Below, piece by piece: positions 10,071 to 64,000 of a stretch of DNA of 64,000 nt. Location: contig NIVC01002683.1 in assembly GCA_002269645.1 (NCBI GenBank), positions 62,001 to 126,000 on the forward strand. The letters are read 5' to 3'. The position numbers and the translations under genes are program-made. Each line of letters opens with the position of its first letter. Positions within the stretch are counted from its first letter, which is position 1. This DNA comes from Macrostomum lignano (lineage: Eukaryota). Under the pieces are notes generated by a model. The model was not told the origin of the DNA. It worked only from the letters and a program-made list of their open reading frames with translations, and did no database searches.

Positions 10071-10819
10071 TTGAAAAAAATCCGAATAACAACACGCAAA
10101 TTAAAAGTAGCCTCAAGTGAAATATTCAATTTCGAGTTATTCAACATTTCTAACAGAAAAAGAAACATTACGAGCCTTGTAACACACTGGTGTATTAAAT
10201 GATAACTGTCACTGTTACTAGCGCACATAAATTTTCAGACCCTTATAAGACAGACTACTGAAGTCAGTAGACGGAACAGAAATAATAACATTAATTTTAT
10301 AAATTTAATTACTAAATTCTGCTAACGAAGAATATACGTCACAGGCACTAGAAGCTAAAATTAAAATAATTTGTGCAATTATATTTAGTTAAAAAATTTA
10401 TTGGAATAGAATAATTCTTTTGCAGCCTAAATAAAGGGGTGCGCGTTTCCACTTTTAACTATATCAGCTATTCTAAACAGGGCCGGACTCGGAAGTCAGA
10501 ATGACGTCATAAAACAGAAAAATGAGCTCTGATGGTATTTAGAAATTCTTTAAAGCCAACGAAAGAAGCTAGACATTCCTTAACAAGTTATCCTCCTATG
10601 ATGCCATTATGTCACTATAATGAAAACTATATACTATTGTATAATTGTATAATTATATAACACAGGGTGTGTCACCGTAGCATATAATAAATAATTTTAA
10701 CTCAAAAAATTAAATTTTACTAAGCTACTAACCCGAGGACGTCACTAAGAAACAAAGGACTTCACTAAACTACTAGTATTATGCTGATGTCGTCATCAGA
10801 ACCCAATTTGTCATCACTA

Positions 10820-17400: not shown

Positions 17401-17701
17401 CTGAGATGCGTCTGACTGACTGTCGCATCACGACTTCCTGGTTTGATTGCGTGAAATTCACAGCCATGAGGGCCAACCCCACCCCCCCCCCCAGTCACAG
17501 AGTGTGCGTGCCTGACGATTAGAAAGTCAGGGCTGCTGTGCCCCCTGTGTGAGCGTGTGTAGGGGTGCTGTGCCTGCGTACAGCATTGGCGCGCTTGTGT
17601 GTGCTCAGCAGTCTGCGGAAGACGGATAGACTGACGCAGACAGACAGACAGACAGACAGGCAGACAGACAGACAGACAGACAGGCAGACAGACTGACAGG
17701 C

Positions 17702-17742
<41 letters not shown>

Positions 17743-17817
17743 GGCAGACACTAAGACAGACAGGCAGACAGACAGTCAGACACTAAGACAGACAGGCAGA
17801 CAGACAGACTGACAGGC

Positions 17818-17858
<41 letters not shown>

Positions 17859-17949
17859 CTAAGACAGACAGACTGACAGGCAGACAGACAGACAGACAGA
17901 CAGACAGGCAGACACTAAGACAGACAGGCAGACAGACAGACTGACAGGC

Positions 17950-17994
<45 letters not shown>

Positions 17995-18117
17995 CTAAGA
18001 CAGACAGACTGACAGGCAGACAGACAGACAGACAGACAGACAGGCAGACACTAAGACAGACAGGCAGACAGACAGTCAGACACTAAGACAGACAGGCAGA
18101 CAGACAGACTGACAGGC

Positions 18118-18158
<41 letters not shown>

Positions 18159-19999
18159 GGCAGACATACATGAAGACAGACGGGCAGGCAGACATACATG
18201 AAGACAGACGGGCAGGCAAACAGACAGACATACATGAAGACAGACGGGCAGGCAGACAGACAGACATACATGAAGACAGACAGTCAGGCAGACAGACACA
18301 TACATGAAGACAGACGGGCAGACAGGCAGACAGACATACATGAAGACAGACGGGCAGACAGACATTCATGAAGACAGACAGGATGTGGGGTTGCTGAGAA
18401 ACCCAATCAATTAGTCACTTTTACAAGCTCAAAACTTCGCAAGCTGGAAATTTCACATTGCCGCCGAAAATTCTGCTCGGTCTGAATCGGTCACTATCGT
18501 AAGATGTCGAGAACAAAAAAATCAGAAAAAAGTCCACGAGTCATTTGCGTCCCCAGAGTCGTTTCAGTCATTTCTTAAGTTAACAGATAAAGTAGAAAAG
18601 AAGTGACTCTAGACGACTCTAAAACTACCAGATGTCATGCAGTACAAGTCGCCAAAAAGTCGTCAAAGAAACGCCTACGAGTTAATTTAGGGCGTTTTAT
18701 TTTCTGAGACTCTGAGGCCGTGGAGTCTTAAGCGCATCTGATTCACTCCCTCCCCCAGTTAATCTGCTCAACCAATGAAATCAGACAGCTTAGGCTTAAT
18801 CTAGATCAGCTCACTTAATCCAGGCAAACCAGCTGGTTTAGCGTCCTCCATAGCCAGAGACCCAGATGAAGATGTTGGCAGAGCTGGCGGAGCTGGACGC
18901 GATCTGAATTTTCGTGAGTTGTAAACATGCAAATTGTAACTGGCTTTGATAAATACTAACTGAATGAGTAGTAAGTAATGGCAAATTTAGAGTGCTGAAT
19001 AATGTGTCTATATCTCGTTTATTATGCAATCCTCTATTCTACAATCACTCGTCTCTATTCTACCCTCTCTCTTCTCGATTCTACGCCGTCTCTCGTCTCT
19101 ATTCTACCCTCTCCCCTCTATTCTACCCTCTCTCTTCTCGATTCTACCCTCTCTCTTCTCGATTCTACCCTCTCTCTCGTCTCTATTCTACCCTCTCTCG
19201 TCTCTATTCTACCCTCTCTCTCGTCTCTATTCTACCCTCTCTCTCGTCTCTATTCTACCCTCTCTCGTCTCTATTCTACCCTCTCTCTCGTCTCTATTCT
19301 ACCCTCTCTCGTCTCTATTCTACCCTTTTTCTCTGTATTCTACCCGCTCTACTCTCTTTTCTACTCTCTCCTCTTTTCTATTCTATTCCTTCTCGCTCTC
19401 TATCCTCTATCCTTTATTAAACCTTTCTCTTCTTTATTCTAGCCTTATTATTCTTCAATCTATCAATCTATCCTCTCCTCTCCCTTCTGATTTCCAATTG
19501 TAAAATTAACAATGAGTAACTGACACACATAATTTTACTCACAGTTGCCCCGAAGCTGCAGAGTCGCCAGCTAAAAACGGCAAATAAGCTTCGGCAGATT
19601 TCTTTCCAGCCCGTAGAAATCCCAAATTCAGACCCGTAGCAGTCTCCAATTTGTCTAGAAATTTTTTATCATAAAACCCGTAGGCTACCGCGCCGCCAAC
19701 CAATCCTGTGACGCCAACTAAAGTGACAGCGATTGCTTTGCCATAGCCAGATGACTGCCGCTTTGGCCTACAGAGATGTTGATAATTTATTTTGATTAAA
19801 TTGATTTTCCATGGTTTTTAGTTTGGCATCCTAAATTCTGGTCAATCATATACTACTGCTATCATTGACTACAGAACGTGAATACGCAGGCTTACATCTC
19901 AGAGGTAGAATTGCCAGAGCTTTCACTGCTGCATAGTTGGCGAGTCTGTTGAATTCTTGAAGCAGATGCAGAACGTCTCTGTTTGAAAAAGATAGGATT
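11496..19999 (-). CDS. IMMT: MICOS complex subunit MIC60 / mitofilin, spliced, 5' end incomplete
   Basis: Phase-compatible GT-AG exons: ~19999-19896 (presequence-like RRSASASRIQQTRQLCSS), 19767-19543 (TM segment GKAIAVTLVGVTGLVGGAVAYGFYDKKF), 18903-18815, 17349-17043, 16537-16414, 16341-16218, 15560-15337 (DLQLLIAHAHSKI), 14109-13924 (ELSRQAAAHTNHV), 13092-12739 (QQLWLAAHSL...LVTRFARV...SRLQ), 11813-11496 (GDLETAVRAMARLPGMARLLADDWIRDARAHLEARQ). These motifs match the mitofilin family. The start-codon exon was not located. Confidence 0.92.
11990..12697. repeat. Intronic minisatellite, ~31 bp (GGAGTATGGGATTTAGGATGGGGATTATCTA)
   Basis: Tandem units fill the last MIC60 intron. Confidence 0.93.
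13122..13886. repeat. Intronic minisatellite, 22 bp (AATATGTAATCAGATTAGGTGT)
   Basis: Tandem units fill a MIC60 intron. Confidence 0.95.
14310..15300. repeat. Intronic minisatellite, ~30-31 bp (AAATCCCAAAATCTCCCAACTCGAGGAGAG)
   Basis: Tandem units. They explain the repetitive ORFs 14200-15278. Confidence 0.93.
15660..16190. repeat. Intronic minisatellite, ~51 bp (CTAAAAGTACATTAGGGGCAATATTCCAATGGTAGCTAACCACAGAAGAAT)
   Basis: About 10 diverged tandem units. Confidence 0.85.
16573..16970. repeat. Intronic minisatellite, 28 bp (CAGCAACTGAGGATCTGGGAGGCTGGCC)
   Basis: About 14 tandem units just upstream (on the minus strand) of the 16537 acceptor. Confidence 0.95.
17633..18382. repeat. (GACA)n compound microsatellite
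   Basis: GACA/GGCA runs with CTAA and CATGAA interruptions. Confidence 0.95.
19030..19330. repeat. CT-rich minisatellite (TCTATTCTACCCTCTCTCTCG)
   Basis: Tandem ~20-22 bp units in a MIC60 intron. Confidence 0.9.
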
Positions 20000-26409: not shown

Positions 26410-27014
26410 CTAAAAAATTCTGAGTTGACGGCTAGCCCCACCCATCGCAAGTTGGTTATTTAACGTGGGCTGTTTGGTCTTAATGTACAGGGCTTCTAAT
26501 AGGCAGAGCATGTGATCTCTATTACAAAAATCAATAGCCTTAATCATTTCGTGTGGTTCAGCCTCACAACAAGAATTGCAGGTTAGCAGGTGTTCGTTAA
26601 TAGCAGAGTTTTTTAGCCAGTGCTCTCTGACCCTCGTGTATAAGTGTCGTTTAGTTTTTCCTATGTAGGAGATGCTCTGGTCCTCAGAGCAAACAAATTT
26701 ATACACGACACCAGCCGCGAGAGGACGTGGAACACTGGATTTCAACTTGCAGACAAACTTAGCAATCTTTTCGGTACGAAACACAACACGGATTTGAGTG
26801 TTTAAGTCTTTACGGAGCAGCTTTTCTAACTTCTTTTTAAACTCTATAGAACAAACACCAAAGTAAGGCAAAGTGATCAAGGGACATTCAGAGGTGGAAT
26901 CACGAACTTTCATCCGATTAGGTTCAGTCAGTTTGTCATTGAGAAAAGAGTTGACAATTTTCATCACAAAGTTCTTAGGATAGCCATTGTAGCTGAGCAG
27001 ATTGGTGAGGATTT
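26410..27014 (-). pseudogene. Truncated Penelope-like ORF C-terminus (GIY-YIG endonuclease)
   Basis: ORF 26410..26967 plus its upstream open frame. It is 5'-truncated at the inversion junction. Confidence 0.85.
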
Positions 27015-27548
27015 CTCAATGACAAACTGACTGAACCTAATCGGATGAAAGTTCGTGATTCCACCTCTGAATGTCCCTTGATCACTTTGCCTTACTTTGG
27101 TGTTTGTTCTATAGAGTTTAAAAAGAAGTTAGAAAAGCTGCTCCGTAAAGACTTAAACACTCAAATCCGTGTTGTGTTTCGTACCGAAAAGATTGCTAAG
27201 TTTGTCTGCAAGTTGAAATCCAGTGTTCCACGTCCTCTCGCGGCTGGTGTCGTGTATAAATTTGTTTGCTCTGAGGACCAGAGCATCTCCTACATAGGAA
27301 AAACTAAACGACACTTATACACGAGGGTCAGAGAGCACTGGCTAAAAAACTCTGCTATTAACGAACACCTGCTAACCTGCAATTCTTGTTGTGAGGCTGA
27401 ACCACACGAAATGATTAAGGCTATTGATTTTTGTAATAGAGATCACATGCTCTGCCTATTAGAAGCCCTGTACATTAAGACCAAACAGCCCACGTTAAAT
27501 AACCAACTTGCGATGGGTGGGGCTAGCCGTCAACTCAGAATTTTTTAG
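27012..27548 (+). pseudogene. Truncated Penelope-like ORF C-terminus (GIY-YIG endonuclease), second copy
   Basis: ORF 27045..27548 has the same translated sequence as the corresponding part of the minus copy. Confidence 0.85.
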
Positions 27549-31320: not shown

Positions 31321-34130
31321 TCAAGTTGTCAATCTCCTAATCAAGATGTCATTCTTCTAATCAAGATGTCATTCTTCTAATCAAGATGTCATTCTCCTAA
31401 TAAAGATGTCATTCTCCTAATAAAGATGTCATTCTCTAATCAATATGTCATTCTCCTAATCAAGATGTCATTCTCTAATCAATATGTCATTCTCCTAATC
31501 CAGATGTCATTCTCTAATCAATATGTCATTCTTCTAATCAATATGTCATTCTCCTAATCAAGATGTCATTCCCCTAATCAAGATGTCATTCTCCTAATCA
31601 ATATGTCATTCTCCTAATCAATATGTCATTCTCCTAATCAAGATGTCATTCTCTAATCAATATGTCATTCTCCTAATCAAGATGTCATTCTCTAATCAAT
31701 ATGTCATTCTCCTAATAAAGATGTCATTCTCTAATCAATATGTCATTCTCCTAATCAAGATGTCATTCTTCTAATCAAGATGTCATTCTTCTAATCAAGA
31801 TGTCATTCTCCTAATAAAGATGTCATTCTCCTAATAAAGATGTCATTCTCTAATCAATATGTCATTCTCCTAATCAAGATGTCATTCTCTAATCAATATG
31901 TCATTCTCCTAATCAAGATGTCATTCTTCTAATCAAGATGTCATTCTTCTAATCAAGATGTCATTCTCCTAATAAAGATGTCATTCTCTAATCAATATGT
32001 CATTCTCCTAATCAAGATGTCATTCTTCTAATCAAGATGTCATTCTTCTAATCAAGATGTCATTCTCCTAATAAAGATGTCATTCTCCTAATAAAGATGT
32101 CATTCTCTAATCAATATGTCATTCTCCTAATCAAGATGTCATTCTCTAATCAATATGTCATTCTCCTAATCCAGATGTCATTCTCTAATCAATATGTCAT
32201 TCTCCTAATCAATATGTCATTCTCCTAATCAAGATGTCATTCCCCTAATCAAGATGTCATTCTCCTAATCAATATGTCATTCTCCTAATCAATATGTCAT
32301 TCTCCTAATCAAGATGTCATTCTCTAATCAATATGTCATTCTCCTAATCAATATGTCATTCTCCTAATCCAGATGTCATTCTCTAATCAATATGTCATTC
32401 TCCTAATCAATATGTCATTCTCCTAATCAAGATGTCATTCTCCTAATCAATATGTCATTCTCCTAATCAAGATGTCATTCTCTAATCAATATGTCATTCT
32501 CCTAATCCAGATGTCATTCTCTAATCAATATGTCATTCTCCTAATCAATATGTCATTCTCCTAATCAAGATGTCATTCTCTAATCAATATGTCATTCTCC
32601 TAATCAAGATGTCATTCTCCTAATCAATATGTCATTCTCCTAATCAATATGTCATTCTCTAATCAATATGTCATTCTCCTAATCAATATGTCATTCTCCT
32701 AATCAATATGTCATTCTCCTAATCAATATGTCATTCTCCTAATCAATATGTCATTCTCCTAATCAATATGTCATTCTCCTAATCCAGATGTCATTCTCTA
32801 ATCAATATGTCATTCTCCTAATCAATATGTCATTCTCCTAATCCAGATGTCATTCTCTAATCAATATGTCATTCTCCTAATCAATATGTCATTCTCCTAA
32901 TCAAGATGTCATTCTCTAATCAATATGTCATTCTCCTAATCAATATGTCATTCTCCTAATCAATATGTCATTCTCTAATCAATATGTCATTCTCCTAATC
33001 AATATGTCATTCTCCTAATCCAGATGTCATTCTCTAATCAATATGTCATTCTCCTAATCAATATGTCATTCTCCTAATCAAGATGTCATTCTCTAATCAA
33101 TATGTCATTCTCCTAATCAATATGTCATTCTCCTAATCAATATGTCATTCTCTAATCAATATGTCATTCTCCTAATCAAGATGTCATTCTCCTAATCAAG
33201 ATGTCATTCCCCTAATCAAGATGTCATTCTCCTAATCAGTGTGTCATTCACTCTCCTAATCAAGATGTCATTTCCCTAATCAATGTCATTCTCCTAATCA
33301 AGACGTCATTCTCTAATCAATATGTCATTCTCCTAATCAAGACGTCATTCTCTAATCAAGATGTCATTCTCCTAATCAAGATGTCATTCCCCTAATCAAG
33401 ATGTCATTCTCCTAATCAAGATTTCACTCTCCTAATCAGGGTGTCATTCACTCTCCTAATCAGGGTGTCATTCACTCCTAATCAGGGTGTCATTCACTCT
33501 CCTAATCAGGGTGTCATTCACTCCTAATCAGGGTGTCATTCACTCTCCTAATCAGGGTGTCATTCACTCCTAATCAAGATGTCATTCTCGTAATTAAGAC
33601 GTCATCATTCTCCTAATCAAGATGTTATTCTCCTAATCAAGATGTCATTCTCCTAATCAAGATTTTATTATCCTAACCAGGGTGTCATGCACTCTCCTAA
33701 TTAAAATGCCACTCTCCTAATCAGGGTGTCATTCACTCTCCTAATCAGGATTTCACTCTCCTAATCAGGGTGTCACTCTCCTAATCAGGATATCACTCTC
33801 CTAATCAGGGTGTCAGTCTCCTAATCAGGATGTCACTCTCCTAATCAGCGTGTCACTCTCCTAATCAGGATGTCACTCTCCAAATCAGCGTGTCACTCTC
33901 CTAATCAGGATGTCACTCTCCTAATCAGCGTGTCACTCTCCTAATCAGGATGTCACTCTCCAAATCAGCGTGTCACTCTCCTAATCAGGATGTCACTCTC
34001 CTAATCAGCGTGTCACTCTCCTAATCAGGATGTCACTCTCCTAATCAGCGTGTCACTCTCCTAATCAGGTTATCACTCGCCTAATCAGGTTATCACTCGC
34101 CTAATCAGGTTGTCACTCTCCTAATCAAGG
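31321..34130. repeat. Satellite of 20-21 bp units (CTAATCAAGATGTCATTCTC)
   Basis: 2.8 kb tandem array. Variants (AATCAGGATGTCACTCTCCT / AATCAGCGTGTCACTCTCCT) replace the unit toward the right end. Confidence 0.97.
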
Positions 34131-34246
34131 TATTAATTTGTCTCAATAGTCATAATGTCAATCTGTAATAGGAAACAAGACTTAAAGACAGCAGACAATC
34201 AAACTGCAGTACAGACTAATTGCTTTAAAATTGCTAAACTTGCTTC

Positions 34247-35098
34247 ATGCTGACCTGGATCAAATCTAGGCTACCAGTTAAAACTGGAGCCAACAGCACA
34301 GTAAGCAAAACTACTAATAGTAGCAACAGTCATGAAGAAAGCACTGCTGACGCTGCACAGGAAAGTGCATCCGTTGCTGACGCAAATTCTGAATCTCTAA
34401 CAGCCATCTCCGTACAGCCATCGATTACGTCATCAGCTTCGTCAATAATCAGTTTTCATAAACAGAAGCCTGCAAAAAATGCTACGGTTGATACTGAGCA
34501 AGGTGTTAACCAACAACAAGACAATGCTTCAGACTCTGATGAAGCAGCAGATGACGGAGACACGGCCGAATCGTCGGCGCTACTGTCCAATTGGTTTAAA
34601 AATTCCAGTGTACTCTCAGGTGCATCCAGCACTAAAGATCCAATTTTACACTGTCTTGGCCTGTCTAGAAAGCAGCGAGTCCTGGTATTTGTCTGCCTGT
34701 TGTTACTAGGCAGTTTGTTTCTCAGTCTTAGTTTCGTCTTTCTTCTCATGCTGCTATTGAAAGCGAGAAAATTTGCCATCTTGTATTCAATGGGCTCTTT
34801 CTGTTTAATATTGTCCTTCTCTGCGCTGTGGGGTCCGGTGGCGCACTTCAAGCATCTTGTCTCCGGGCCTAGGATTACATTTTCGGCCGCTTATTTCAGC
34901 AGTTTGATTGGCACTTTGTATTGCGCTATTGGGCTGCACTCTGCCCTAGCCGCTCTGGTTTGTTGCGCCTGTCAAATTGGCTGTTTAGTCTGGTATTTGG
35001 TTTCCTACATTCCTGGTGGAGTTAAGGGACTTCAAGTTTTTGCTAAAATGTTCTACTCGGCTTCCGTTCGAACAGTGAAGTCTTGCGCTCCGGCTTAG
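34247..35098 (+). CDS. SFT2D3: Got1/Sft2-family vesicle transport protein (SFT2D3-like), intronless
   Basis: LSRKQRVLVF...KARKFAILYSMGS...LWGPVAHFKHLVSGPR...WYLVSYIPGG matches the Sft2 domain. The long low-complexity N-terminus is as in SFT2D3/SFT2C. Paralogue assignment is by recall. Confidence 0.88.
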   Translation: MLTWIKSRLPVKTGANSTVSKTTNSSNSHEESTADAAQESASVADANSESLTAISVQPSITSSASSIISFHKQKPAKNATVDTEQGVNQQQDNASDSDEAADDGDTAESSALLSNWFKNSSVLSGASSTKDPILHCLGLSRKQRVLVFVCLLLLGSLFLSLSFVFLLMLLLKARKFAILYSMGSFCLILSFSALWGPVAHFKHLVSGPRITFSAAYFSSLIGTLYCAIGLHSALAALVCCACQIGCLVWYLVSYIPGGVKGLQVFAKMFYSASVRTVKSCAPA

Positions 35099-36864: not shown

Positions 36865-38039
36865 AGAAGAGAGGTCAGTCAAGCGGGCAAAAGAAAAGCC
36901 AAACTTTTTATCGGTCTGGTAGTGGCTGGGGCGCCACTTTTTGTTTGCCTACCTTTAGTCCGTCATCAATAAATTTATTTCAAATGCGACCAATTTTAAG
37001 TGGAGTTGGTAAAACAGGGCAAGGATGCCAACTTAACGGGGCTGCTTGTAAGAAGCTAGAGGTTATTTTTGCGGCTTCAAACACTTTCAATATCTTGTAA
37101 AATTTATTACATTTTTATTAGATTAATATCAAAAAGGAAAATATGTCATTTTTGCTACTGAAAATAGTAGATGTGCGCATTTTTGCATGACATGTCTAGC
37201 TATTCTATTAATTAACTGTGGTTCAAACAATAAATACCTTCTAAAAACAATAAGAATTCTTGTGATTGTATTAAAGTTTAAAAATCCAATAATTTTTTAC
37301 ATTTTTATGATTTCGTTCAATTTCACTTTTAAACAGAAAAAGATATTGGTAACTGGTCAGTCTGTTACAATCTGACTAACAAGATCCTAAATTTGCATGT
37401 ATTTTTGACACTATATTCTCGTTTAATTTAGCCTGATAACGTGTGAAGAGTTCATATTGTACGAGTATCTGCATGCAGAAGAGTGTTCAATATGTACATA
37501 TGAGCTATAACTGTACAGTTAATCTGGTGGCCGCATACAGTATTCTAAAAGCATTTTGCATGGAGCTAAGATATCAAACGACAATAAATATCGAACGTAC
37601 ACATTAAAATTGAAATTTATAGTACATTTACTTCTACATGTAAATGATTTTACTGTGTACATGTCTATCAATAGTGGCCTTGGTTCAAGTACAAGTCACA
37701 AATTATGTACAGTTACATGCAAATCATTTTTCTCCAATGCATTATGGGGATTAGTGCAGCCTTTTACAGCTCGTTACAATCCCTCAAAAAGCTCGCTTAC
37801 ATGTACAAGGTACAGCATAGTAGCTCTCCTACAATTAATATCTCTATTCAGCACCCTGTTTTATTATTTAAAGGTGCCTGTAAATTAGTCTTGTCCCACG
37901 ACCCACAGTTACGAGCTATTCCAACGACGTAATCCTTTCCCTTGCGTACCGCTGACTAATTCTTAGGTCAAGCTTGCCTATAAGTAGTTTGAGAAAGTTT
38001 CTCCTATATAGCTCTCTTATTGATATAGCTCGTAGGTCT

Positions 38040-41000
38040 CAACTCCCTTACAAGTTTAAGCTATCTCCCTCACAGCTCACTCCCTTGCAGCTCTCCCCTA
38101 CAGCTGTCTCCCTCACAGCTCACTCCCTTGCAGCTCTCCCCTACAGCTGTCTCCCTCACAGCTCACTCCCTTGCAGCTCTCCCCTACAGCTGTCTCCCTC
38201 ACAGCTCACTCCCTTGCAGCTCTCCCCTACAGCTGTCTCCCTCACAGCTCACTCCCTTGCAGCTCTCCCCTACAGCTGTCTCCCTCACAGCTCACTCCCT
38301 TGCAGCTCTCCCCTACAGCTGTCTCCCTCACAGCTCACTCCCTTGCAGCTCTCCCCTACAGCTGTCTCCCTCACAGCTCACTCCCTTGCAGCTCTCCCCT
38401 ACAGCTGTCTCCCTCACAGCTCACTCCCTTGCAGCTCTCCCCTACAGCTGTCTCCCTCACAGCTCTCCCCTACAGCTGTCTCCCTTACAGCTCACTCCCT
38501 TGCAGCTCTCCCCTACAGCTGTCTCCCTCACAGCTCTCCCCAACAGCTGTCTCCTTCACAGCTGTCTCCCTCACAGCTCTCCCCTACAGCTGTCTCCCTC
38601 ACAGCTCACTCCCTTGCAGCTCTCCCCTACAGCTGTCTCCCTCACAGCTCACTCCCTTGCAGCTCTCCCCTACAGCTGTCTCCCTCACAGCTCTCTCCCT
38701 CACAGCTCTCTCCCTTACAGCTCTCTCCTACAGCTGTCTCCCTTACAGCTCTCTCCTACAGCTGTCTCCCTTACAGCTCTCTCCCTTACAGCTGTCTCCC
38801 TTACAGCTGTCTCCCTTACAGCTCACTCCCTTGCAGCTCTCCCCTACAGCTGTCTCCCTCACAGCTCACTCCCTTGCAGCTCTCCCCTACAGCTGTCTCC
38901 CTCACAGCTCTCCCCTACAGCTGTCTCCTTCACAGCTCTCTCCCTTGCAGCTCTCCCCTACAGCTGTCTCCCTCACAGCTCACTCCCTTGCAGCTCTCCC
39001 CTACAGCTGTCTCCCTCACAGCTCTCCCCAACAGCTGTCTCCTTCACAGCTCTCTCCCTTGCAGCTCTCCCCTACAGCTGTCTCCCTCACAGCTCACTCC
39101 CTTGCAGCTCTCCCCTACAGCTGTCTCCCTCACAGCTCACTCCCTTGCAGCTCTCCCCTACAGCTGTCTCCCTCACAGCTCTCTCCCTCACAGCTCTCTC
39201 CCTTACAGCTCTCTCCTACAGCTGTCTCCCTTACAGCTCTCTCCCTTACAGCTGTCTCCCTTACAGCTGTCTCCCTTACAGCTCACTCCCTTGCAGCTCT
39301 CCCCTACAGCTGTCTCCCTCACAGCTCACTCCCTTGCAGCTCTCCCCTACAGCTGTCTCCCTCATAGCTCTCCCCTACAGCTGTCTCCCTCACAGCTCTC
39401 TCCCTCACAGCTCTCTCCCTTACAGCTCTCTCCTACAGCTGTCTCCCTTACAGCTCTCTCCCTTACAGCTGTCTCCCTTACAGCTGTCTCCCTTACAGCT
39501 CACTCCCTTGCAGCTCTCCCCTACAGCTGTCTCCCTCACAGCTCACTCCCTTGCAGCTCTCCCTACAGCTGTCTCCCTCACAGCTCTCTCCCTCACAGCT
39601 CTCTCCCTTACAGCTCTCTCCTACAGCTGTCTCCCTCACAGCTCACTCCCTTGCAGCTCTCCCCTACAGCTGTCTCCCTCACAGCTCTCCCCTACAGCTG
39701 TCTCCCTTACAGCTCACTCCCTTGCAGCTCTCCCCTACAGCTGTCTCCCTCACAGCTCTCCCCAACAGCTGTCTCCTTCACAGCTCTCTCCCTTGCAGCT
39801 CTCCCCTACAGCTGTCTCCCTCACAGCTCACTCCCTTGCAGCTCTCCCCTACAGCTGTCTCCCTCACAGCTCTCCCCTACAGCTGTCTCCCTTACAGCTC
39901 ACTCCCTTGCAGCTCTCCCCTACAGCTGTCTCCCTCACAGCTCTCCCCAACAGCTGTCTCCTTCACAGCTCTCTCCCTTGCAGCTCTCCCCTACAGCTGT
40001 CTCCCTCACAGCTCACTCCCTTGCAGCTCTCCCCTACAGCTGTCTCCCTCACAGCTCTCTCCCTCACAGCTCTCTCCCTTACAGCTCTCTCCCTTACAGC
40101 TCTCTCCCTTACAGCTGTCTCCCTTACAGCTCACTCCCTTGCAGCTCTCCCCTACAGCTGTCTCCCTCACAGCTCACTCCCTTGCAGCTCTCCCCTACAG
40201 CTGTCTCCCTCACAGCTCTCCCCTACAGCTGTCTCCCTTACAGCTCACTCCCTTGCAGCTCTCCCCTACAGCTGTCTCCCTCACAGCTCTCCCCAACAGA
40301 TGTCTCCTTCACAGCTCTCTCCCTTGCAGCTCTCCCTACAGCTGTATCCCTCACAGCTCACTCCCTTGCAGCTCTCCCCTACAGCTGTCTCCCTCACAGC
40401 TCACTCCCTTGCAGCTCTCCCCTACAGCTGTCTCCCTCACAGCTCACTCCCTTGCAGCTCTCCCCTACAGCTGTCTCCCTCACAGCTCTCTCCCTCACAG
40501 CTCTCTCCCTTACAGCTCTCTCCTACAGCTGTCTCCCTTACAGCTCTCTCCCTTACAGCTGTCTCCCTTACAGCTGTCTCCCTTACAGCTCACTCCCTTG
40601 CAGCTCTCCCCTACAGCTGTCTCCCTCACAGCTCACTCCCTTGCAGCTCTCCCCTACAGCTGTCTCCCTCACAGCTCTCCCCTACAGCTGTCTCCCTTAC
40701 AGCTCACTCCCTTGCAGCTCTCCCCTACAGCTGTCTCCCTCACAGCTCTCCCCAACAGCTGTCTCCTTCACAGCTCTCTCCCTTGCAGCTCTCCCCTACA
40801 GCTGTCTCCCTCACAGCTCACTCCCTTGCAGCTCTCCCCTACAGCTGTCTCCCTCACAGCTCTCCCCTACAGCTGTCTCCCTTACAGCTCACTCCCTTGC
40901 AGCTCTCCCCTACAGCTGTCTCCCTCACAGCTCTCCCCAACAGCTGTCTCCTTCACAGCTCTCTCCCTTGCAGCTCTCCCCTACAGCTGTCTCCCTCACA

Positions 41001-41830
41001 GCTCACTCCCTTGCAGCTCTCCCCTACAGCTGTCTCCCTCACAGCTCTCTCCCTCACAGCTCTCTCCCTTACAGCTCTCTCCCTTACAGCTCTCTCCTAC
41101 AGCTGTCTCCCTTACAGCTCTCTCCCTTACAGCTGTCTCCCTTACAGCTCACTCCCTTGCAGCTCTCCCCTACAGCTGTCTCCCTCACAGCTCACTCCCT
41201 TGCAGCTCTCCCCTACAGCTGTCTCCCTCACAGCTCTCCCCTACAGCTGTCTCCCTTACAGCTCACTCCCTTGCAGCTCTCCCCTACAGCTGTCTCCCTC
41301 ACAGCTCTCCCCAACAGATGTCTCCTTCACAGCTCTCTCCCTTGCAGCTCTCCCCTACAGCTGTATCCCTCACAGCTCACTCCCTTGCAGCTCTCCCCTA
41401 CAGCTGTCTCCCTCACAGCTCACTCCCTTGCAGCTCTCCCCTACAGCTGTCTCCCTCACAGCTCACTCCCTTGCAGCTCTCCCCTACAGCTGTCTCCCTC
41501 ACAGCTCTCTCCCTCACAGCTCTCTCCCTTACAGCTCTCTCCTACAGCTGTCTCCCTTACAGCTCTCTCCCTTACAGCTGTCTCCCTTACAGCTGTCTCC
41601 CTTACAGCTCACTCCCTTGCAGCTCTCCCCTACAGCTGTCTCCCTCACAGCTCACTCCCTTGCAGCTCTCCCCTACAGCTGTCTCCCTCACAGCTCTCCC
41701 CTACAGCTGTCTCCCTTACAGCTCACTCCCTTGCAGCTCTCCCCTACAGCTCTCTCCCTTACAGTTCTCTCCCTCACAGCTCTCTCCCATACAGCTCTCT
41801 CCTACGGACCTCTCCTACAGCTGCCTCTCC
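38040..41830. repeat. C-rich satellite: 43-bp trimer (CAGCTCTCCCCTA-CAGCTGTCTCCCTCA-CAGCTCACTCCCTTG) of 13-15 bp monomers
   Basis: Directly visible period. The 43-aa periodicity of the ORFs on all three plus frames shows those ORFs are repeat artefacts. Confidence 0.98.
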
Positions 41831-42102
41831 TTTACAGCTCTCCGGGCTACAGGTACCAGTACTTTCGCACTACAGTCGTACAGTCACAGTTGACTCTCAC
41901 ACCACCAATTATACGCTTCGTATACAAACGAGCGAACAAAATCACAACAAAACAACAAAATCACAAGTATAATACATTATGCTTTAATATCGTTCGATCT
42001 GTCAACCTTAAAATTTCAGCTCAAATCGTATTCATTTTTCCTCGAAAATAATCTACATTACTTATCTAAACCTATACTAATTCTAAAGTAAAAACACAAA
42101 TA

Positions 42103-46666
<4,564 letters not shown>

Positions 46667-47514
46667 GAAGGTATACTAGGATCGGCAAGGGGGGGGGGTT
46701 CATTTCATAGGGGGTTTCTTCGAAGTCTATTTTTAGAAAAGTATCGATTGCCTACAAAGAAGCCGATCAAAGTGGAGAATGTTCTGTGGCTGTCACAGAA
46801 CAGCACTCGGCCATTGACTATAAAATCAAATAGGCAACTATATGTAGGTGCTCTGCAGAAAGAAAAGTCCCAAAAAACAACTGCTTTACCTTAATGTACG
46901 TTTGCACTACTCACCGTAAGTAGCTACTAGTAGGTCAAAAATTTGAATGGGAACTGAATCAAAAAGAAATAAACTGGACATATTTCATTGATTTTTTTTC
47001 ACTAAATACGTTATTTGATGAGCTACTCAAGTTTCTTATGTAGTTTTTGTTTTAATTAGAAGCACTCCACGCTTGCAATACCGTTTGGTGCAATAATTAC
47101 ATATCCTTGGAAATCGCAGCCAAATTTTTATTCAATTGACTTTTTTGAATCTTCCATACTTTTTATGACGAATTTTTTTCAAGTTTTTGACACTGTTTGC
47201 TATTTTCATAACGCATTAAAAATTCAAGATTTTTATACGATTTTTGAGAAGCTCAATCGCTCAATACTGTTTTTATGCTCGTAGAAATTTTCTGCAATAA
47301 TTTTTTTCTATATTACAAAATGCAGCCCGCATTAGTTATAATCATTTATATTCCAGATTTTTCATGAAGTTTTAATGATGCAATATATTTTAAGCTTTTA
47401 ACTAGCAGCTCTAGATAACTTATGCGATATTAACTATTTTAAACAGCATGATTTAGAAAGATTTATCTGGATATTGGAGTTACATAATTCATTTTACTCT
47501 CAAATATATTCGGA

Positions 47515-48015
47515 CCCAAACTTATTCCGGACACAAACTTATTCCGGACACAAACTTATTCCGGACACAAACTTTTTCCGGACATAAACTTATTCCGGAC
47601 ACAAAATTTTTCCGGACACAAACTTATTCTGGACACAAACTTATTCCGGACACAAACCTACTACGGACAAAAACCTATTCCGGACACAACCATATTCAGA
47701 ATCAGACACAAATCTATTCGGACACAAATCTATTCGGACACAAATCTATTCGGACACAAAACTATTTCGGACACAATTCAGTTCAGATACAAAGCTTTTT
47801 GGACGCAAAGCTTGTCGGACACGAACCTATTCTGGACACAAACCTTTTCGGACACAAACCTATTCGGACACAGTTTTTTCGGACACAAAGATATTCGAAT
47901 AGAAACCTATTTAAACAGAAGGCCAGTAGGGCACAAAGCTATTCGGACACAAAGCTATTCGGACACAAAACTCGGACACAAAAATCTTGGAACTGAAACC
48001 TATTCGGATACAAAA
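47515..48015. repeat. ~17-bp minisatellite TTATTCCGGACACAAAC between the convergent ILK and RASL10 3' ends
   Basis: Tandem units that degenerate toward the right. Confidence 0.88.
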
Positions 48016-48193
48016 TAATCAATCAAAGAGCCGTTCGGAAAAATCAACCAATGCGGACAGTTGAACGCATTCGGCCAAAAAAGGACTTGTGTTAACCTCA
48101 ACAGCGTTGGTATATCTTGCACTGCAGAACGCTGCACACAGTCTCTCGCAGGGCCGCTTGCATTCTGGCCGCCGTGCCCAAGTGCACAGCCTC

Positions 48194-48886
48194 TCACAGC
48201 TCCATCGCTCGAAACAATTCTCTAAAAGCGTTCCAGACTCGCCAATTAAACTTGGCCGAACAATCGGCGTAGTGACATTTCCAGCGCTTGCGGACGGCGT
48301 AGCCGGGCGATCCGTTGCGACCCTGCAGTTCGCCTCCGTCAGCAAGGATCAAGTCGACCTTGTTGCCAAGCACCAATACTGGAGCCGATATGCCGCGTTC
48401 CAGCATTTGAAAACGAATTCGCCGGGCCTTGTGGAAGCTCGACTCGTCGTTGAGGTCGAACACCAGCAGGTATGCGTTGGCTGAGCACAAGCCGAAGCCG
48501 CTCAGTTGGCTTGAGAATTCGTTGGACCTATCGACTGGAAAGTCGTCAATGGGCGGACAATCAACCAAGCAGGTGTCGAATGCTCTCTCATTCACTACAA
48601 TCGTTGGATAATGAATATTTGGACGAACTGTTGAAGTGTACACCTCGGGTGATGCGTAGTTGACGAATTGTTCAACTAGAGTTGTCTTGCCAACTCCGCG
48701 AGGTCCCAGCACAACCAGAAGAATGCGTTGCACCACCCGAGCTCGAAGTCTGGCCCGATTGTCGATTACCGAATACGCGGTGTTTGCGACTGATGATGCA
48801 ACTCCCGACACGGTGACAGGGGCGTGTTGCTGGGGCTGCCCAGCACCCCACAGTCGGTAATTGCCAAATGGTAGCGTTCTTTGCAT
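48194..48886 (-). CDS. RASL10B: Ras-like protein family member 10 (RASL10-like small GTPase); probable ATG at 48886; homology continues past the TGA at 48194-48196
   Basis: GPRGVGKTTLVEQF (G1), DCPPIDDFP (RASL10-type DxPP at G3), AYLLVFD, VLGNKVDL (G4) and VRKRWKCHYADCSAKFNW closely follow RASL10 motifs. Orthology to the vertebrate A or B paralogue cannot be resolved. Confidence 0.88.
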   Translation of the reverse strand: MQRTLPFGNYRLWGAGQPQQHAPVTVSGVASSVANTAYSVIDNRARLRARVVQRILLVVLGPRGVGKTTLVEQFVNYASPEVYTSTVRPNIHYPTIVVNERAFDTCLVDCPPIDDFPVDRSNEFSSQLSGFGLCSANAYLLVFDLNDESSFHKARRIRFQMLERGISAPVLVLGNKVDLILADGGELQGRNGSPGYAVRKRWKCHYADCSAKFNWRVWNAFRELFRAMEL

Positions 48887-49074
48887 TGTGTTGCATGAAG
48901 TTTTATGCGTATGAGATGCAAAATAGAGACAGCAATTGAGCATGGCGCTACTATATAATACTTTTGCAGAGTCAATAAAAATTTATGAGACCTTATTTCC
49001 AGCCAATAATTTTGAAGGCAACAAAACTCCAATTTTTGAGGTCTTCAAATTTCTCTAGCTCGCAGGATACTCTA

Positions 49075-49465
49075 GCTTTCCAGCCAGACATTTACCAGCC
49101 TTTTTCTAGCCAGACATTTAACAGCTTTATCCAGCCAGACATTTACCAGCCTTTTTCTAGCCAGACATTTACCAGCCTTTTTCTAGCCAGACATTTACCA
49201 GCCTTTTTCCAGCCAGACATTTACCAGCCTTTTTCCAGCCAGACATTTACCAGCCTTTTTCTAGCCAGACATTTACCAGCCTTTTTCTAGCCAGACATTT
49301 ACCAGCCTTTTTCCAGCCAGACATTTACCAGCCTTTTTCCAGCCAGACATTTACCAGCCATTTTCCAGCCAGACATTTACCAGCCTTTTTCCAGCCAGAC
49401 ATTTACCAGCCTTTTTCCAGCCAGACATTTACCAGCCTTTATCCAGCCAGACATTTACCAGCCAG
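49075..49465. repeat. ~26-bp minisatellite CCAGCCAGACATTTACCAGCCTTTTT upstream of RASL10
   Basis: About 15 tandem units. Confidence 0.93.
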
Positions 49466-49701: not shown

Positions 49702-52252
49702 AGTACGCAGCCCCGCATGCAAAGTCACAATTAGAGCAGGGCGCGTCAGATGGCGCGCCGCAAAGCCTGAGAGCGGACGAAGTCCGCCCCGTTAGCTGAG
49801 TCGGGCGCCCCAGCGTCGCAAAGAAGGCAGTCCACCTATCGACGGGTTCGGGCCAGACCCCGCCTGAACGGGCCCTGCAAGGTGAGCAGCAGGACGTCCT
49901 GAACAGGTTGGAGGTAATAGCCCTCGGCCCGGATCACGTGAAGTCGCCGCCAGCGCAGGATGAGGGACAGGCGCTGCAGCTTGGCCCGATCGTACAGCGC
50001 CTCGGTCTCTCGTAAGCTCGAAAGGCCGCACGGAGCAGCCCTGAGTCCAGCTACCGCTCCAGCGTAGCTGTCAACGTCTACGTCTCGGCGTTGCATAGCA
50101 GGACGGTTTCGACCACCGCCTGCCACAGCCGAGCCCTCTGGCGGTCGGGCAGCGCTTCGGACTGGAAGACGGTTCGGATCAAACGGAAGGCCGCCCAGGC
50201 AAATCCTCTGCGCCGTCGGAGGCCACGTCGGGCACTAGACCGCCGAGGTGGGCGAACCGCTAGCAGCGTGCGAACCTGGTCGTCTGCCCATCTAGGCCGC
50301 TGAGATGTTGGCCGGCTCAGTCAGCACCTCGGTCTTTAGCGTGTTGACAACCAGACCGACGGACATCAGCGAGATCCCGCGGTGGTCTTCTTTCCGCGTT
50401 GTCTCTGCCCTCTTTGGTATCGGCCCGATGTGCGCAACGGTCTACGCGGTGGACGCAGGAGCGCCGGCGAGCACGCGGTTCATGGCGCTTGTCAGCTGAG
50501 AGGCCACACAGCAAAGCCGCAGCGCCTTGACCGGCACTTCGTCGGCGCCTAGCGCCTTGCCGCCTGGTAATTTCCGAGAAAACAGCACAACGTCCTCTGT
50601 GGTGACTGGGCTGGTGCAGAAGTCCTCCTCAGCTGGGAGCGGCGTATCCAGTGGGAGCGCAAAACTGGCAGGCAGCGGTGACGCGGGCGCGTTCACGATG
50701 CCGGCGAAGAAGTCGCGCAATTCGTTCCTGCGCTCCTCCGGGGTGTCGCCGGCCAGGTTCAGCACCACACGCTTTCTACACCCCGTCAGAGTCAGGACGG
50801 CCGTCCACACTGCGCGGCTCTTCACGTCGGGGCCGGCTGCAGTGATGGTCCGAACGGAGTCGTCGACAGCGGCCTGCTGCCGCTCGTCTAGAAGGCGCTC
50901 AAAGCGTATTCAGCGTCGCCCGTGGGCCGCCGGTTTCTGCGGAGTCGCTCGATGTTGAACCGCGCCTGCCTGATGGTCGGGTCGCTCTGCCAGACAGGCA
51001 GCGATTTCTGCGCTCTGCAGCGGCTCTAGCGGAGGTGCTGATGTCGGAATACTCCGCCTCCCGCTGGTCTCTAAGCGCGCCGACGAAGGCGCCCGCAAAT
51101 TGACACTTCAAGTAGGTGTCCAACAGTGCACGATAGTAGCGCGGTGGCCGCTGCTTTGGCGGTCGGTAGAGCTGGTCGTGGAACCGCAAGTCGCAGAGCA
51201 GAAGTCGATGGTCTGACCAGAGAGCCAGTGGAGCCCACGGTGTCGCAGTTGGTGATGCGGCGGCGCTCGCGAGTGCGCGAACCAGTGCATGATCGAGTTG
51301 CGCCAGTCCCCTTGTGGCGTTCTACCCGCGTGCGTTCCATCGCCTTCTCTTGCAGCCCGCGTAGGTGACCAGGCAGGCAGGGGGGCTTGCGGAACTGGGT
51401 ATTCGCGGACACCAGGTCCAACCGGTCAAGCAGATCCTCCAGCACATCGGTGTTGGCGTTCTCGCATCCCGCGACAAAGGGCGAGCGCTCGTACCTCCGC
51501 GGAACTGCGTTAAGGTCTCCGAGCACTGCCAGCATATCGCGGTTTGGCACCTCTTCCAGCTGCCCAGCCCGGAAGTCGAAGAAGGCACGAGCCTCCTCGT
51601 GAGGTGAGCAGCGATGGGTGCATACGCGCAGAACAGCCGGATGCAGCGGGCGCGCAGGCGCAGGTCGACCCGCATCAGACGCGGGGACAGCGAAGCGCAG
51701 TGCACGCTCTGCCGAAGGTGCCGTCCGATCAGCACGCCGACACCGCCCCGGCCGCGGTCGTCTGCCGACGTGTACAGGAGGCTCCAGCCGGCTCCCAGGT
51801 CCTCAGAGTGTAGCCCAGGCTCAGCCACGATAGAAACCTCCTGTAGCGTGATGGGGTCCAGCTGAAGGTCGTGGGCCAACTGGACGAGAATGATGCGACG
51901 CCAAGGGGCCTTCAGAGTTCGGCGATTCATCGTGCCGAGTCTGAGGCGGCCACCTGGTACCGCTGGGGCCAGATGGAGGTTGGCCTCGTGGTCCCCGGCG
52001 CCACCCGGTGGATCTATAGTTGGAATAGAAACAGGCGCCTGGCCACGCCACGGATTCGCCCTCGCCAGTTGAGCTCGTGCCGCCACTCAGTGCGACTTTG
52101 GGCGCTGCGCCGACCTCTGCGTGTCCCTGGTGTGCTGAGCTTTGCTGCCGCAGCCGAGGTGCGACCGTCCGAGCCAACCGAGGTGATCCAGCCGCGATGA
52201 CAGGTCAGGTGTCAGCACTACTTGCACGGTTGTGAAAATATAATGGCTCAGA
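49665..52252 (-). mobile_element. Degenerate non-LTR retrotransposon (RTE-like): APE endonuclease, internally deleted RT and (GTT)n tail
   Basis: APE motifs LGTMNRRTL, TLQEV, RGGVGVL, CAYAP and VLGDLNA. RT-flanking motifs GGKALGADEV, GPIPK..DHRGISLMS, GLVVNTLKTEV and VLLCNAET*TLT. It carries frameshifts and stops, an (AAC)n run at ~49667-49700 on the plus strand, and a possible TSD TACGGTGT (49657-64, 52253-60). Confidence 0.85.
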
Positions 52253-59764: not shown

Positions 59765-62700
59765 TTACAAGCAGTTGGGACAAAAGAATAGTTGCTTCCT
59801 TTGGGAAGCACGCTGGACATCAGAGTGGCTCATGGAAATGCACGAAGGATGGTACCACTCTTCGCAGCCATCACATTGAACCATGAACTCGCCACGAAAG
59901 TAAGGTGCGCGGCATCGGCAGAAAAGCTTAAACTGAAGGGAAAAAATAACGCTGCGTCTGAAGCTTCGCCAACTGGTAACCGGGAAGGGGCGCATCTTCC
60001 TTTGCTCTAAACACTCCAGTAAGTGTGGTCGCATTTGCTCCGCGGCGAAATTGCACATCATCGGATCGATGTTGTTGGCTAGCGACACTGCGAAGGCGAT
60101 CGTGTAGAGCCCGCAGTCCAGTGCCCGCTTCTGTCGGGCGACGTTCGCAAAATCCAGCCTTAATGTCGCTTTTCTGTCCGCCACAAAAGCTGCGATTTGG
60201 CGGACTACGTCATCATCCAACTCCTGGGATGGGGGGTTCGAGTCGTAGATAACTAGCGATTGAGTCAAGTTGGACATCAGGAACCAGTGACCGCGTTGAA
60301 TGTCGTGAACAGCCTGAATGAACTTCTTTCCTAGGGAAAATACATGTATGCGATGTCTAAATGTAGTCCGAATAATTGCTGTACAAAGCGATTGATGGCA
60401 GAAGTCATTTGAACAAGCTTTAAAATCATGATGTACGAGCGTATGACAAAATTTCGCGCAACAAGTGGTAATCAATTGCAAAATCTTGTATCGTAGAAAT
60501 CGCTATGATAGAAGTTACCTTCTTCAACGTGTACATCCTTGTGATGAAGAATAGCTGGGTTAGCTAGCCCAGCAATGTCGGGAGTTGCTGTGCGTAAAAG
60601 CACGAATACCGCGGTCAATACTTCACCAGTGAGCTGGCCGTGCGTCGCTTCAATGCTTGCTCTGAAACATTACGAGTAGGCGACATAGCAATCTGTGTTT
60701 TCGTATACTCGTATCTATACATAAAACATCAAAGCATTCTATTTCACATCCACAGTAGCGGACAAAAGAAAGTAAAAAGGGCTTAGCCTAATATCGATAC
60801 TTAGTGCTAAAATTACACACAGACGAGACGGGAGTTGAGATCGATTAAGGAATTTTTTACCCTGGTTCATTTTTTCTTCGGTATGTGAGAGCAATTTGAG
60901 CTCCAATGGAATACAGCAGGGTGAATTTAGGAGAAGCGCGGCTACCAAAATGCAAATTTGGTAGGGAGGGTACCACCGCTGGAGGGAGGGTACCACCCTC
61001 CAGCGGTGCCGGCTAATGCTCGTCGGCCACTGCCTCCGCAGCTACGGCAGAGGGGAGCAAAACCCGCTGGCGCTCACCGTGCTACATCAGCCAACCGAGC
61101 GTCTCCGATGGGGCCAAGGCCGGACCGCCACGCTGACCGCCACGCTAGAGTCTGACCTGCAAGCCATTAACCTGACCCCACAATCTGTCACAAACTGTTC
61201 TTCTCGTCTCTTCTGCGAGCGCGTGCGCGCAAGACGCCAACATAATCTTTGCGTCCTTATATATATATATATAAGTCGAAAGAGGAAGAATACAAATACA
61301 TTTACATTACATGACATTATTTGTCGTTAAAACTCCCGCCCCTTTCTTTATTGGTAAGAGGCAACACGCCACATCCAAAAAAACTCCTGAATCCGCCACT
61401 AGATAAAAACGATTAATGATTGGTTTTCCCCTGGTACACACTGTTTCAGAAGCTCAGACGTACACTTTTACTCACTTGTCAGCTGTGCTCAGCCCTAGCT
61501 CTGAAATCCATGAGCTCGACTCGACACATGCCTGCAGGTCGGGCACAACCAGTGCCTTGCCGCTGCAGTCGTAAAGATCCCGAGGCACTTGAAGCAAAGA
61601 ATTATTTCCGTGGCCTTCATGTCCGACCTCGCCCACATGGGTGTCTTCAGAAATATTGACATGGCCGGCTACTTGCTCGTCGTCTTGAGCATCGCGATCG
61701 TCATGGATGCCTTCTATGCCGTCATATCTGTCCCCACCTAGGGCGTCGCTAAGACCATCGAATTGGACATCACAAATACGGCCTCTTCTGCCGCTGCTAC
61801 TACGGCCACGTCCTCTGTAACCACGGCTTCTACCACAACAGTCGCCCTCTCGTTTTTCGTCACGTGTACCAATTCGCGTGCAGCCTCTTTGTTCGTTTCC
61901 TGATACGTTCCGATGACCAGCTCTTCTCCCATGTCTTCGGAAGTACTTGGCCACTGGAAAGTACTTCGGAGCGGTACTGTGGCTCGCTTTTTTGTTTACA
62001 ACGAGAGCTTCTGAAGCTTCAACTGCACTGTCATCAAACGAGTGCTGAATCGGTGTCAATACCGACTCTGTACCTTGCTCTGCTTCTGGCACAGGTGACT
62101 CGATTGTACGTTGTCTTTTGTTCATACATGTAGGAACGGAGTCTTCCTCGGAATTCTCGCCGTCGAAATCCAAGTCTATCAATTCTCGTCGTCGGAAGCT
62201 GTGAACTGCTGCGGAAGTAATCACCCGATGCTGCAGGCGGCCTCTAGAGTGCTCTTCCAAAAGTGATATAAATTCCAATAGCGGTTGCGATCGGCCATGC
62301 ATCACATCTCTTCTGACAGTTCTGTGGTACACTTCCACAGATCCTTCGCTGTTGCGGAATTCTTGCACTGTGCTCTGTCCAGTAAAGAATCGTTGGCAGT
62401 CAATCATGAGGCCACTGAAGAGCGGAAAGTATGCGTACAAATTGACGACCTTCTGCGCCAATTTTTCGTTAAGGTACGCATTGATCATCGGCAGCTGCGA
62501 TTCACTTGCTTGGCGGCAAGCTGCATTGATTCGCTCGAAGATCTGTTGTGCCTGACTAAAAAAGCGGGACGATGAGCGAATCGTTTCCCGACTCATAATG
62601 TTTTCCGGAGCGTTCATTTCAACGCCTAGCATGGGCTCGTTGTCACCAACATCAGACGCCTCAATCAACAGTGTTTCGACTCGCGGCATGGCTCTTCTTG

Positions 62701-64000
62701 CGTCGCGCTCGAGCAGAACATGCAGCATGTTCTGAAGATTGGCTAGGCCTTCCGCTGAAGTGGTGCTTGCAACAATCCGCGCAAACGCCCGAAGGTACAG
62801 TGTCCTTACCTGAGGACTTGCGCTGCGCACTTCTTGCCAATTCCGAACCTCATTGATGATGTGACTTCTACCAAGAACAATAGCGGTGCGCCGACGTGCC
62901 TGCTGCAAAGTTGCTTGCATAAACTTTGGAATTCCACTCTGTCCATTTTCTGATTGCAGCGCGATCAGAAAGCACCAATCGAGATATTCGCGAATTCCTA
63001 ATCCATTGAAGACCTGTATGAGGGCATGTAGTGTCGGCCAGTTAAAATCCGTCGTAATCTTTGCTATTTTCACAGTGCTGTGGCCCATTTTTTGTTCCTT
63101 TATCTTCTGAAGCCACTTTGCTAACATGCTAGTCAATTGCACGGTATCATGATTACAAGTCAGAACGTCGAATAGAGAAACTTGGGTCATTCCAATAGTT
63201 TGCTCGGCTGCCATCACTAAGGCGTAATGGTATACTGGCTTCAGTGGCATTCCACCTGGCCAGCTGCAAACTGACGCTCCTGTCGAGTCGATAACTAGGT
63301 TGATTGGCATCTTTAACTGTTTCATAAGAGATAGAGCCTCTGCAGCCATCTCCGGGTGATATGCTCCAATAGCCGTAAGCGAAATATCGCCCGCAAACTC
63401 AAAGTAATGCACGTACGCCTTTAGTTTCGGCGAATTGCTGACGCTCAACAGAAAGTTATGCACAGGGATGTCTGGGCACAGTTTTTTTTTCTCTTTGTTG
63501 TACTGGCGAATTCCTTGAAGCATCCTTTGCGATGGAATGTTGCGCAGATCGTCATTTGTTGCAGCAACTGAGGCCTGCAGTACGGCAGCTCCCTCAGTAT
63601 CAGCTCTTGCTTTTAAGCCTGCATCTCGAACCTTTGTAGGTCTAAGGGGGTGCTGCAATGGCTTATGGGTCTGCTCCAGACGCACTTCGCAGCCCTTCAC
63701 CTTTAACTTCCATCGCCCAGGACACGAAGACGGTTTTGGGTCGCCAGCCAGTCGCGCCGAGCATTTCAATGAGTACTTAGCAGACTCAGGGCCATCAAAA
63801 GAACTGCGAGCAATTGAGAGGCTGCAGTGCTCCACCCAGCAGTTCTGCACTTCACGCAACAAAACGCCGTTAAATTGCTCTCTCTGCGCTCGCCGAGTTA
63901 CTTCTTGCATGGTATTGTTAACTTCGTGCCATTTCTCTTTGAGACACCCAAATGTCCCGACAAAACGTTGAACTTCAGCTTCAGAAGGCGACGAAGGCGT
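59765..64000 (-). CDS. MULE/NOF-FB-type DDE transposase fused by splicing to a Ulp1-like cysteine peptidase and a PHD finger; 5' end lies beyond the window
   Basis: The frame is open from 64000 to 61476, with VIDSTG (D1), YHYALV, TTDFNWPTLHALIQVFN (D2), GRSH and SVEVYHRTVRRD (E). Phase-matched GT-AG introns at 61475-60662 and 60518-60331 join GQLTGEVLTAVFVLL..., GKKFIQAVHDIQRGHWF, IYDS, QKRALDCGLYTIAFA and CRC...MVQCDGCEEWYHPSC...FFCPNC. Confidence 0.8.

Follow-up and report, generated by a model that had tools for sequence, protein, structure and literature searches.

The window, that is, the whole 64-kb stretch of DNA that we analyzed, carries on its reverse strand a gene for a small GTPase of the RASL10B type whose coding sequence is a single exon with no intron. 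This gene spans ~1.1 kb of unique DNA with tandem arrays on both sides, and no second copy of it was found within the 64-kb window. It is convergent with an ILK-like gene (42103-46666, forward strand) composed of an ankyrin-repeat first exon (42103-~42610), further exons near 43292-43471, ~43906-44080, 45410-45526 and 46196-46666, and four GT-AG introns. The ILK-like protein is 33-41% identical to human ILK and its gene has a TGA stop where human ILK ends. The GTPase ORF starts with an ATG at 48943 (reverse strand), has a second ATG at 48886, ends with the C-terminus ...NWRVWNAFRELFRAMEL and is closed by a TGA at 48196-48194; the frame of the body comprises 262 stop-free codons. The same frame reads, in order, FRELFRAMEL, the TGA (48196-48194), EAVHLGTAARMQAALRETVCSVL (48193-48125), CAG (48124-48122), CKIYQRC and a second TGA (48100-48098). 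The coordinates and translations around both TGAs given in a preliminary description of this DNA, including those of a 33-nt GT..AG pair (48197-48165), proved exact in every case. The features of the locus are the following:

49077-49463: 26-nt tandem array, ~135 nt 5' of the first ATG, bounding the gene
48197-48943, reverse strand: main ORF, 249 codons, ending ...FRELFRAMEL (ORF list and translation)
48203-48718, reverse strand: Ras G domain, residues 57-228 of the 230-aa form (Pfam match, Rap2A alignment and family alignment)
48194-48196, reverse strand: in-frame TGA where the G domain gives way to the hypervariable region (translation, alignments)
48165-48197, reverse strand: GT..AG pair of 33 nt, judged to be a chance pair inside former coding sequence
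48125-48193, reverse strand: probable relic of the hypervariable tail, 23 codons, EAVHLGTAARMQAALRETVCSVL (matrix rank, alignments, coding-like GC)
48125-48136, reverse strand: CSVL, in the register of the CAAX box of relatives (alignments)
48122-48124, reverse strand: CAG where complete relatives have a stop, one transition from TAG
48098-48121, reverse strand: seven extra codons (CKIYQRC) and the second TGA, without family homology (composition nearing that of the flanks)
47507-48014: 16-17-nt tandem array, starting ~85 nt 3' of the second TGA, bounding the gene

The gene belongs to the RASL10B family of Ras-like GTPases and encodes a complete G domain. The RASL10 affiliation had been advanced in the preliminary description and our searches confirmed it: the Pfam Ras domain (PF00071) matched the ORF with E=1.3e-17 over residues 57-228 of the 230-aa form, and the named matches in an exhaustive HMMER search against 1.84 billion representatives (119 matches at E<=1e-10) were all 'ras-like protein family member 10B' or '10A', from molluscs, nemerteans, annelids, insects, lampreys and other vertebrates. 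The family alignment showed that G1 (GPRGVGKT), G4 (NKVD), G5 (CSAK) and the switch-I Thr are all intact, together with the subfamily hallmarks VDCPP (DCPP for DxxG), DCSAKFNW and FREL. The G domain also aligned over its full length to solved structures of the Ras family; in the case of Rap2A, the alignment reached residue 164 of the 167-residue construct, so that the TGA falls where the last G-domain helix ends. Since the body ORF and all G motifs are intact, this gene is not an old pseudogene. It shares with RASL10B and RASL10A (RRP22) the DxPP in place of DxxG, the xCSAK(F/Y)NW motif, the FRELxxA last helix, and an R.Q.AL.R...CaaX tail in register, and with the Tubulanus and Pecten genes the single-exon coding sequence. 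In contrast with them, its ORF stops 23 codons early, its CAAX box is non-terminal, and the GHKP and RRNR motifs have been lost.

Our database searches recovered only distant relatives of this protein. Neither the 249-aa nor the 230-aa ORF was on record as an exact match, a word-indexed search with the GTPase body gave no match, and the relatives recovered by a profile search were all <=42% identical. The best relatives came from the exhaustive search of representatives (53% and 50% identity) and were chimeric gene models present only in UniParc. With a mean identity of ~39% to canonical lophotrochozoan members and 50-53% to its nearest matches, the body is among the most divergent of the RASL10B family. 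A partial match of 49% identity, P0059, is a Macrostomum lignano protein that resembles P0001. The nearest relatives, P0001, P0002 and P0059, appear to come from Macrostomum (as named for P0059 and deduced for the other two), which appears to have several RASL10B-like paralogues, so that the loss of the tail in one copy would be cheap. Both the abundance of tandem repeats in the window and its intron sizes are in line with published Macrostomum data, which is suggestive of the same affinity. P0001 (1,897 aa) and P0002 (1,398 aa) are models in which the RASL10B domain is followed by long junk-like sequence, and both are probably mis-predicted; the P0002 model runs on past CSLM, and the tail of P0001 departs after GHKAASAR and may carry an independent lesion. 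The RASL10B genes of Tubulanus and Pecten, the relatives for which we read the DNA, are single-exon and have a TGA directly after the CAAX box. We had also considered a retrocopy, given an intronless gene among repeats, and dropped this reading because the Tubulanus and Pecten relatives are likewise single-exon.

The homology downstream of the TGA is real and above chance. We built a weighted position matrix from the last 24 residues of 53 distinct CaaX-ending C-termini of the family, taken from the matches, and scored with it all stop-free 24-mers of the six-frame translation of the window (n=38,937). The tail obtained 15.9 bits, ranking 1 of 38,937 (null mean -13.7, sd 5.7); when the four CAAX columns were left out, its rank was 41 of 38,937. 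Real tails of the family scored between 13.6 and 40 (median 27.6), with the window tail at the low end of this range. The stretch EAVHLGTAARMQAALRETVCSVL is homologous to a family consensus ..GHKPxxxRxQDALRRNxCxxL, and in MAFFT alignments it was gap-free against the closest relatives (e.g., DYRDFGHKPAAMRMQDAFRRNRCHVM in P0003), and H, R, Q, A, L, R and the Cys of the CAAX box all kept their register. The in-register continuation through the TGA noticed in the preliminary description is thus borne out by the matrix rank and the gap-free alignment, and the RASL10B C-terminus that it had quoted occurs verbatim in sperm whale RASL10B (P0129). Across these 23 codons there is neither indel nor frameshift, and the replaced conserved residues include GHKP, now VHLG, and RRNR/Q, now RETV. 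Tail and body had mean identities of 0.40 and 0.39, respectively, to 31 canonical relatives, a comparison for which 23 codons give low power; strongly conserved columns were kept in 8 of 17 cases in the tail and 53 of 89 in the body (Fisher p=0.42, underpowered). A tail with no measurable extra decay relative to the body means either that the truncation is recent for this lineage or that the tail is still somewhat constrained.

Two separate departures from the family architecture occur inside 75 nt, namely the TGA before the tail and the missing stop after CSVL. At the column of the TGA, the closest relatives (P0001, P0003 and P0014) have Arg and others have K, Q, I, W or V. With Arg in the closest relatives, a single CpG transition from CGA to TGA is the simplest origin, and a plausible one judging from the aligned residues; the CpG observed/expected ratio across the window is 0.69, i.e., the DNA is CpG-depleted. 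On the other side of the tail, all 53 of the distinct family tails used end at the CAAX box, and CSVL in the window is followed by CAG and lies 8 residues from the end of the extended frame, in agreement with the preliminary description, which had pointed out that CSVL is non-terminal, with CAG and then seven codons behind it. With the ORF stopping at MEL-TGA, the translated protein does not end in the CAAX box. GC content by codon position (1/2/3) was as follows:

Body: 0.59/0.44/0.57
23-codon tail: 0.70/0.52/0.74
8 post-CAAX codons: 0.38/0.38/0.62
Flanks: 0.36-0.39/0.30-0.50/0.37-0.41

Composition is therefore coding-like through CSVL and flank-like directly beyond, and this break is consistent with CSVL having been the end of the ancestral coding sequence.

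We lean towards a recent nonsense truncation with a relic tail, the remainder being either a young pseudogene or a gene for a soluble G-domain protein. The hypervariable region and the CAAX box would have been cut off from the G domain by a nonsense mutation, for which CGA (Arg) to TGA is the simplest change, and the 23 codons past the TGA would be a relic of the ancestral tail and not an extension in use. The terminal stop after the CAAX box would then have been lost (now CAG) when the tail was already irrelevant. The reverse order is also possible, with the loss of the stop coming first and ending prenylation, and the nonsense mutation being tolerated afterwards. The change from stop to CAG would be harmless only if the tail was no longer functional, and a non-functional tail provides the most economical explanation of both anomalies. 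If expressed, the product would be a complete G domain without lipid anchor, i.e., a soluble or mislocalized GTPase. We infer the direction and the order of both mutations, and likewise that the tail is untranslated. The locus carries the disabling lesions by which pseudogenes are recognized (the premature TGA and the missing post-CAAX stop), and according to Jungreis et al. 2016 (PMC5100048) the sequence behind a recent nonsense substitution still looks coding although no true read-through takes place. Several observations weigh against a recent truncation: the tail is no more decayed than the body (0.40 versus 0.39 identity; p=0.42), its 23 codons are free of frameshifts, the body ORF and the G motifs are intact, and the recency required sits uneasily with a second hit on a stop codon of just 3 nt. 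Among the four options offered in the preliminary description, a young nonsense allele or pseudogene is nonetheless the one that we judge most likely, whereas a switch by read-through or micro-intron is not supported.

A programmed read-through of the TGA, with a fraction of ribosomes making a form 31 residues longer and, hence, two GTPase isoforms, seems unlikely to us. It would account for a homology that carries on in frame and without indel for 23 codons, in a tail as conserved as the body and of coding-like composition. However, an in-frame coding signal past the TGA is equally expected of a recent nonsense mutation and does not discriminate between the two. TGA is the leakiest stop and a single-exon gene would evade exon-junction-dependent decay; the addition of a targeting signal by read-through is, moreover, a known principle (e.g., for peroxisomal signals). 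However, the extended product would end ...CSVLQCKIYQRC, with an internal CAAX box that cannot be prenylated, so that the only known function of the tail would not be delivered. The leaky stop contexts are TGA-C and UGA-CUAG, and both are absent here, where the context is CTG TGA GAG (TGA-G). The importance of this context for read-through is documented (Jungreis et al. 2016, PMC5100048). Likewise, a 116-nt segment that includes the stop and the sequence after it showed no exceptional structure, its MFE of -36 kcal/mol being no improvement on shuffled sequence (mean -39.7 kcal/mol, z=+1.1). The stop is not conserved at the family level, since the available relatives (<=53% identity) have a sense codon at this position, and our literature search found no report or precedent of RASL10B read-through nor of any CAAX box that arises naturally in this way. 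We also doubt that the TGA is usefully decoded in any way, by read-through or other recoding, to provide a bare G domain alongside a form with a remodelled, non-prenylated tail ending ...CSVLQCKIYQRC; if true, TGA decoding would represent a lineage-specific rewiring of the localization of a RASL10B GTPase.

The remaining ways around the TGA encounter similar difficulties. The products of read-through, of the 33-nt GT..AG option and of a 66-nt GT..AG option all terminate ...CSVLQCKIYQRC (the 66-nt in-frame option yielding ...MELVLQCKIYQRC). As every in-frame bypass ends in this manner, CSVL stays internal and provides no prenylation signal. The preliminary description had proposed that read-through or splicing would make membrane targeting switchable; with CSVL never terminal and the CAAX box left inside ...CSVLQCKIYQRC by each in-frame bypass, switchable prenylation fails as it was written. 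The 40-nt and 76-nt GT..AG options were discarded, being out of frame and giving ends without a CAAX box, and the window contains no alternative 3' exon with a family-like tail (CAAX) and a stop. Splicing of the 33-nt micro-intron (48197-48165), which would remove the TGA and join ...MEL to MQAALRETVCSVL..., is very unlikely. Its length is divisible by three, its donor (CT|GTGAGA) resembles that of ILK exon 1 (TTG|GTGAGG), and very short introns occur in some parasitic flatworms. Nevertheless, its excision would delete the residues aligned to the conserved H and R of the family and would still keep CSVL non-terminal; its 3' end is not clearly pyrimidine-rich (pyrimidine fraction 0.47, versus 0.53 and 0.73 in two ILK acceptors); and RASL10B is intronless in Tubulanus and Pecten. 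At 33 nt, it would also have less than a tenth of the length of any of the four ILK introns (~400-1300 nt) and would lie far below the mean intron lengths of published Macrostomum genomes (0.56-1.4 kb).

An error of the assembly or consensus at the TGA and/or the CAG, or a null allele of a heterozygous locus, would turn the real gene into an ordinary CAAX-terminated RASL10B. This explanation, which we regard as distinctly improbable, benefits from the fact that a single transition separates each lesion from what would be expected there (CGA and TAG, respectively) and that the rest of the gene looks intact and in frame. However, unique, non-homopolymer sequence is unlikely to carry two independent substitution errors within 75 nt, the common errors of long reads are indels that break the frame, which here is unbroken, and the tail has many more substitutions at conserved positions. 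Even less probable, and indeed hardly credible, is that the TGA is recoded as selenocysteine or that A-to-I RNA editing turns UGA into UGG (Trp). Sec is indeed encoded by TGA and the editing is chemically possible, but the residue aligned with the TGA in relatives is R, K, Q or I and never Cys, and the region has neither a SECIS element nor an unusually stable duplex. In fact, an Rfam scan of the window detected no SECIS or other family at the gathering score, and a search of 46800-48300 gave no SECIS-like element at E<=10. In addition, the A of UGA follows a G, the 5' neighbour that ADAR favours least. A reassigned TGA was considered separately and ruled out: the ILK gene stops at a TGA at its expected C-terminus and the long ORFs of the window have no internal TGA.

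Compared with described systems, this locus resembles the recent nonsense substitutions that read-through screens deliberately filter out (Jungreis et al. 2016, PMC5100048), in which a stop stands where relatives have a sense codon and a protein-like frame lies behind it; it differs in having a second lesion, the lost terminal stop. It also shares with the functional read-through of animals, abundant in Drosophila and Anopheles, a TGA as first stop, an in-frame extension and a second stop 31 codons further on, but lacks a leaky four-base context, RNA structure, a stop conserved among the available relatives and a usable end signal. In-frame homology past a stop is, by itself, no indication of read-through. 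In terms of annotation, caution is needed with this divergent RASL10B-like protein, whose model should end at MEL or be flagged as disrupted. If close relatives kept the TGA, this would become a rare Ras-family GTPase that sheds or toggles its membrane-targeting region by translational recoding; such toggling is not supported by sequence alone.

The rest of the window is rich in repeats. A 10-kb array (1-10071), in which G and T are strongly biased by strand, repeats a 23-nt unit (TCAGGGTTGTTTAATGGCGATTC) ~444 times, and the region 10875-45384 has an exceptional density of mini- and microsatellites, including a 15/43-nt array (38059-41842), a 20-nt array (31321-34129), (CAGA)n (17637-18381), (TGTC)n (44194-44811) and (ACTA)n (45050-45384), with several arrays placed within the ILK introns. 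These repeats yield long spurious ORFs, such as one of 1,332 aa (37974-41972). A single-ORF gene of 283-286 codons (34238-35098, forward strand, TAG stop) encodes a protein with a Got1/Sft2-like domain (PF04178, E=3e-28) and a Ser/Asp-rich N-terminal extension. In 26413-27545, two ORFs on opposite strands have a common peptide (..NDKLTEPNRMKVRDSTSECPLITLPYFGVCSIEFKKKLEKLL..) and one of them contains a GIY-YIG nuclease domain (PF01541); the arrangement resembles two Penelope-like element ends in inverted orientation. Close to the end of the window, an intact 812-aa ORF (61472-63910, reverse strand; open to the window end as 842 codons) had no Pfam match and no database relative, and a 238-aa ORF ending in a PHD finger lies downstream of it on the same strand; possible readings of the whole region (59765-64000) are an unclassified mobile element and a lineage-specific gene. 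A combined query of the 812-aa ORF, the Sft2-like ORF and an ILK exon likewise gave no match. Finally, just upstream of the GTPase gene lies a GC-rich block (49800-52200, up to 65% GC) with many overlapping ORFs, one of which encodes a retrotransposon-like peptide (..KLPGGKALGADEVPVKALRL..) with no Pfam match; this block probably represents a decayed non-LTR element.
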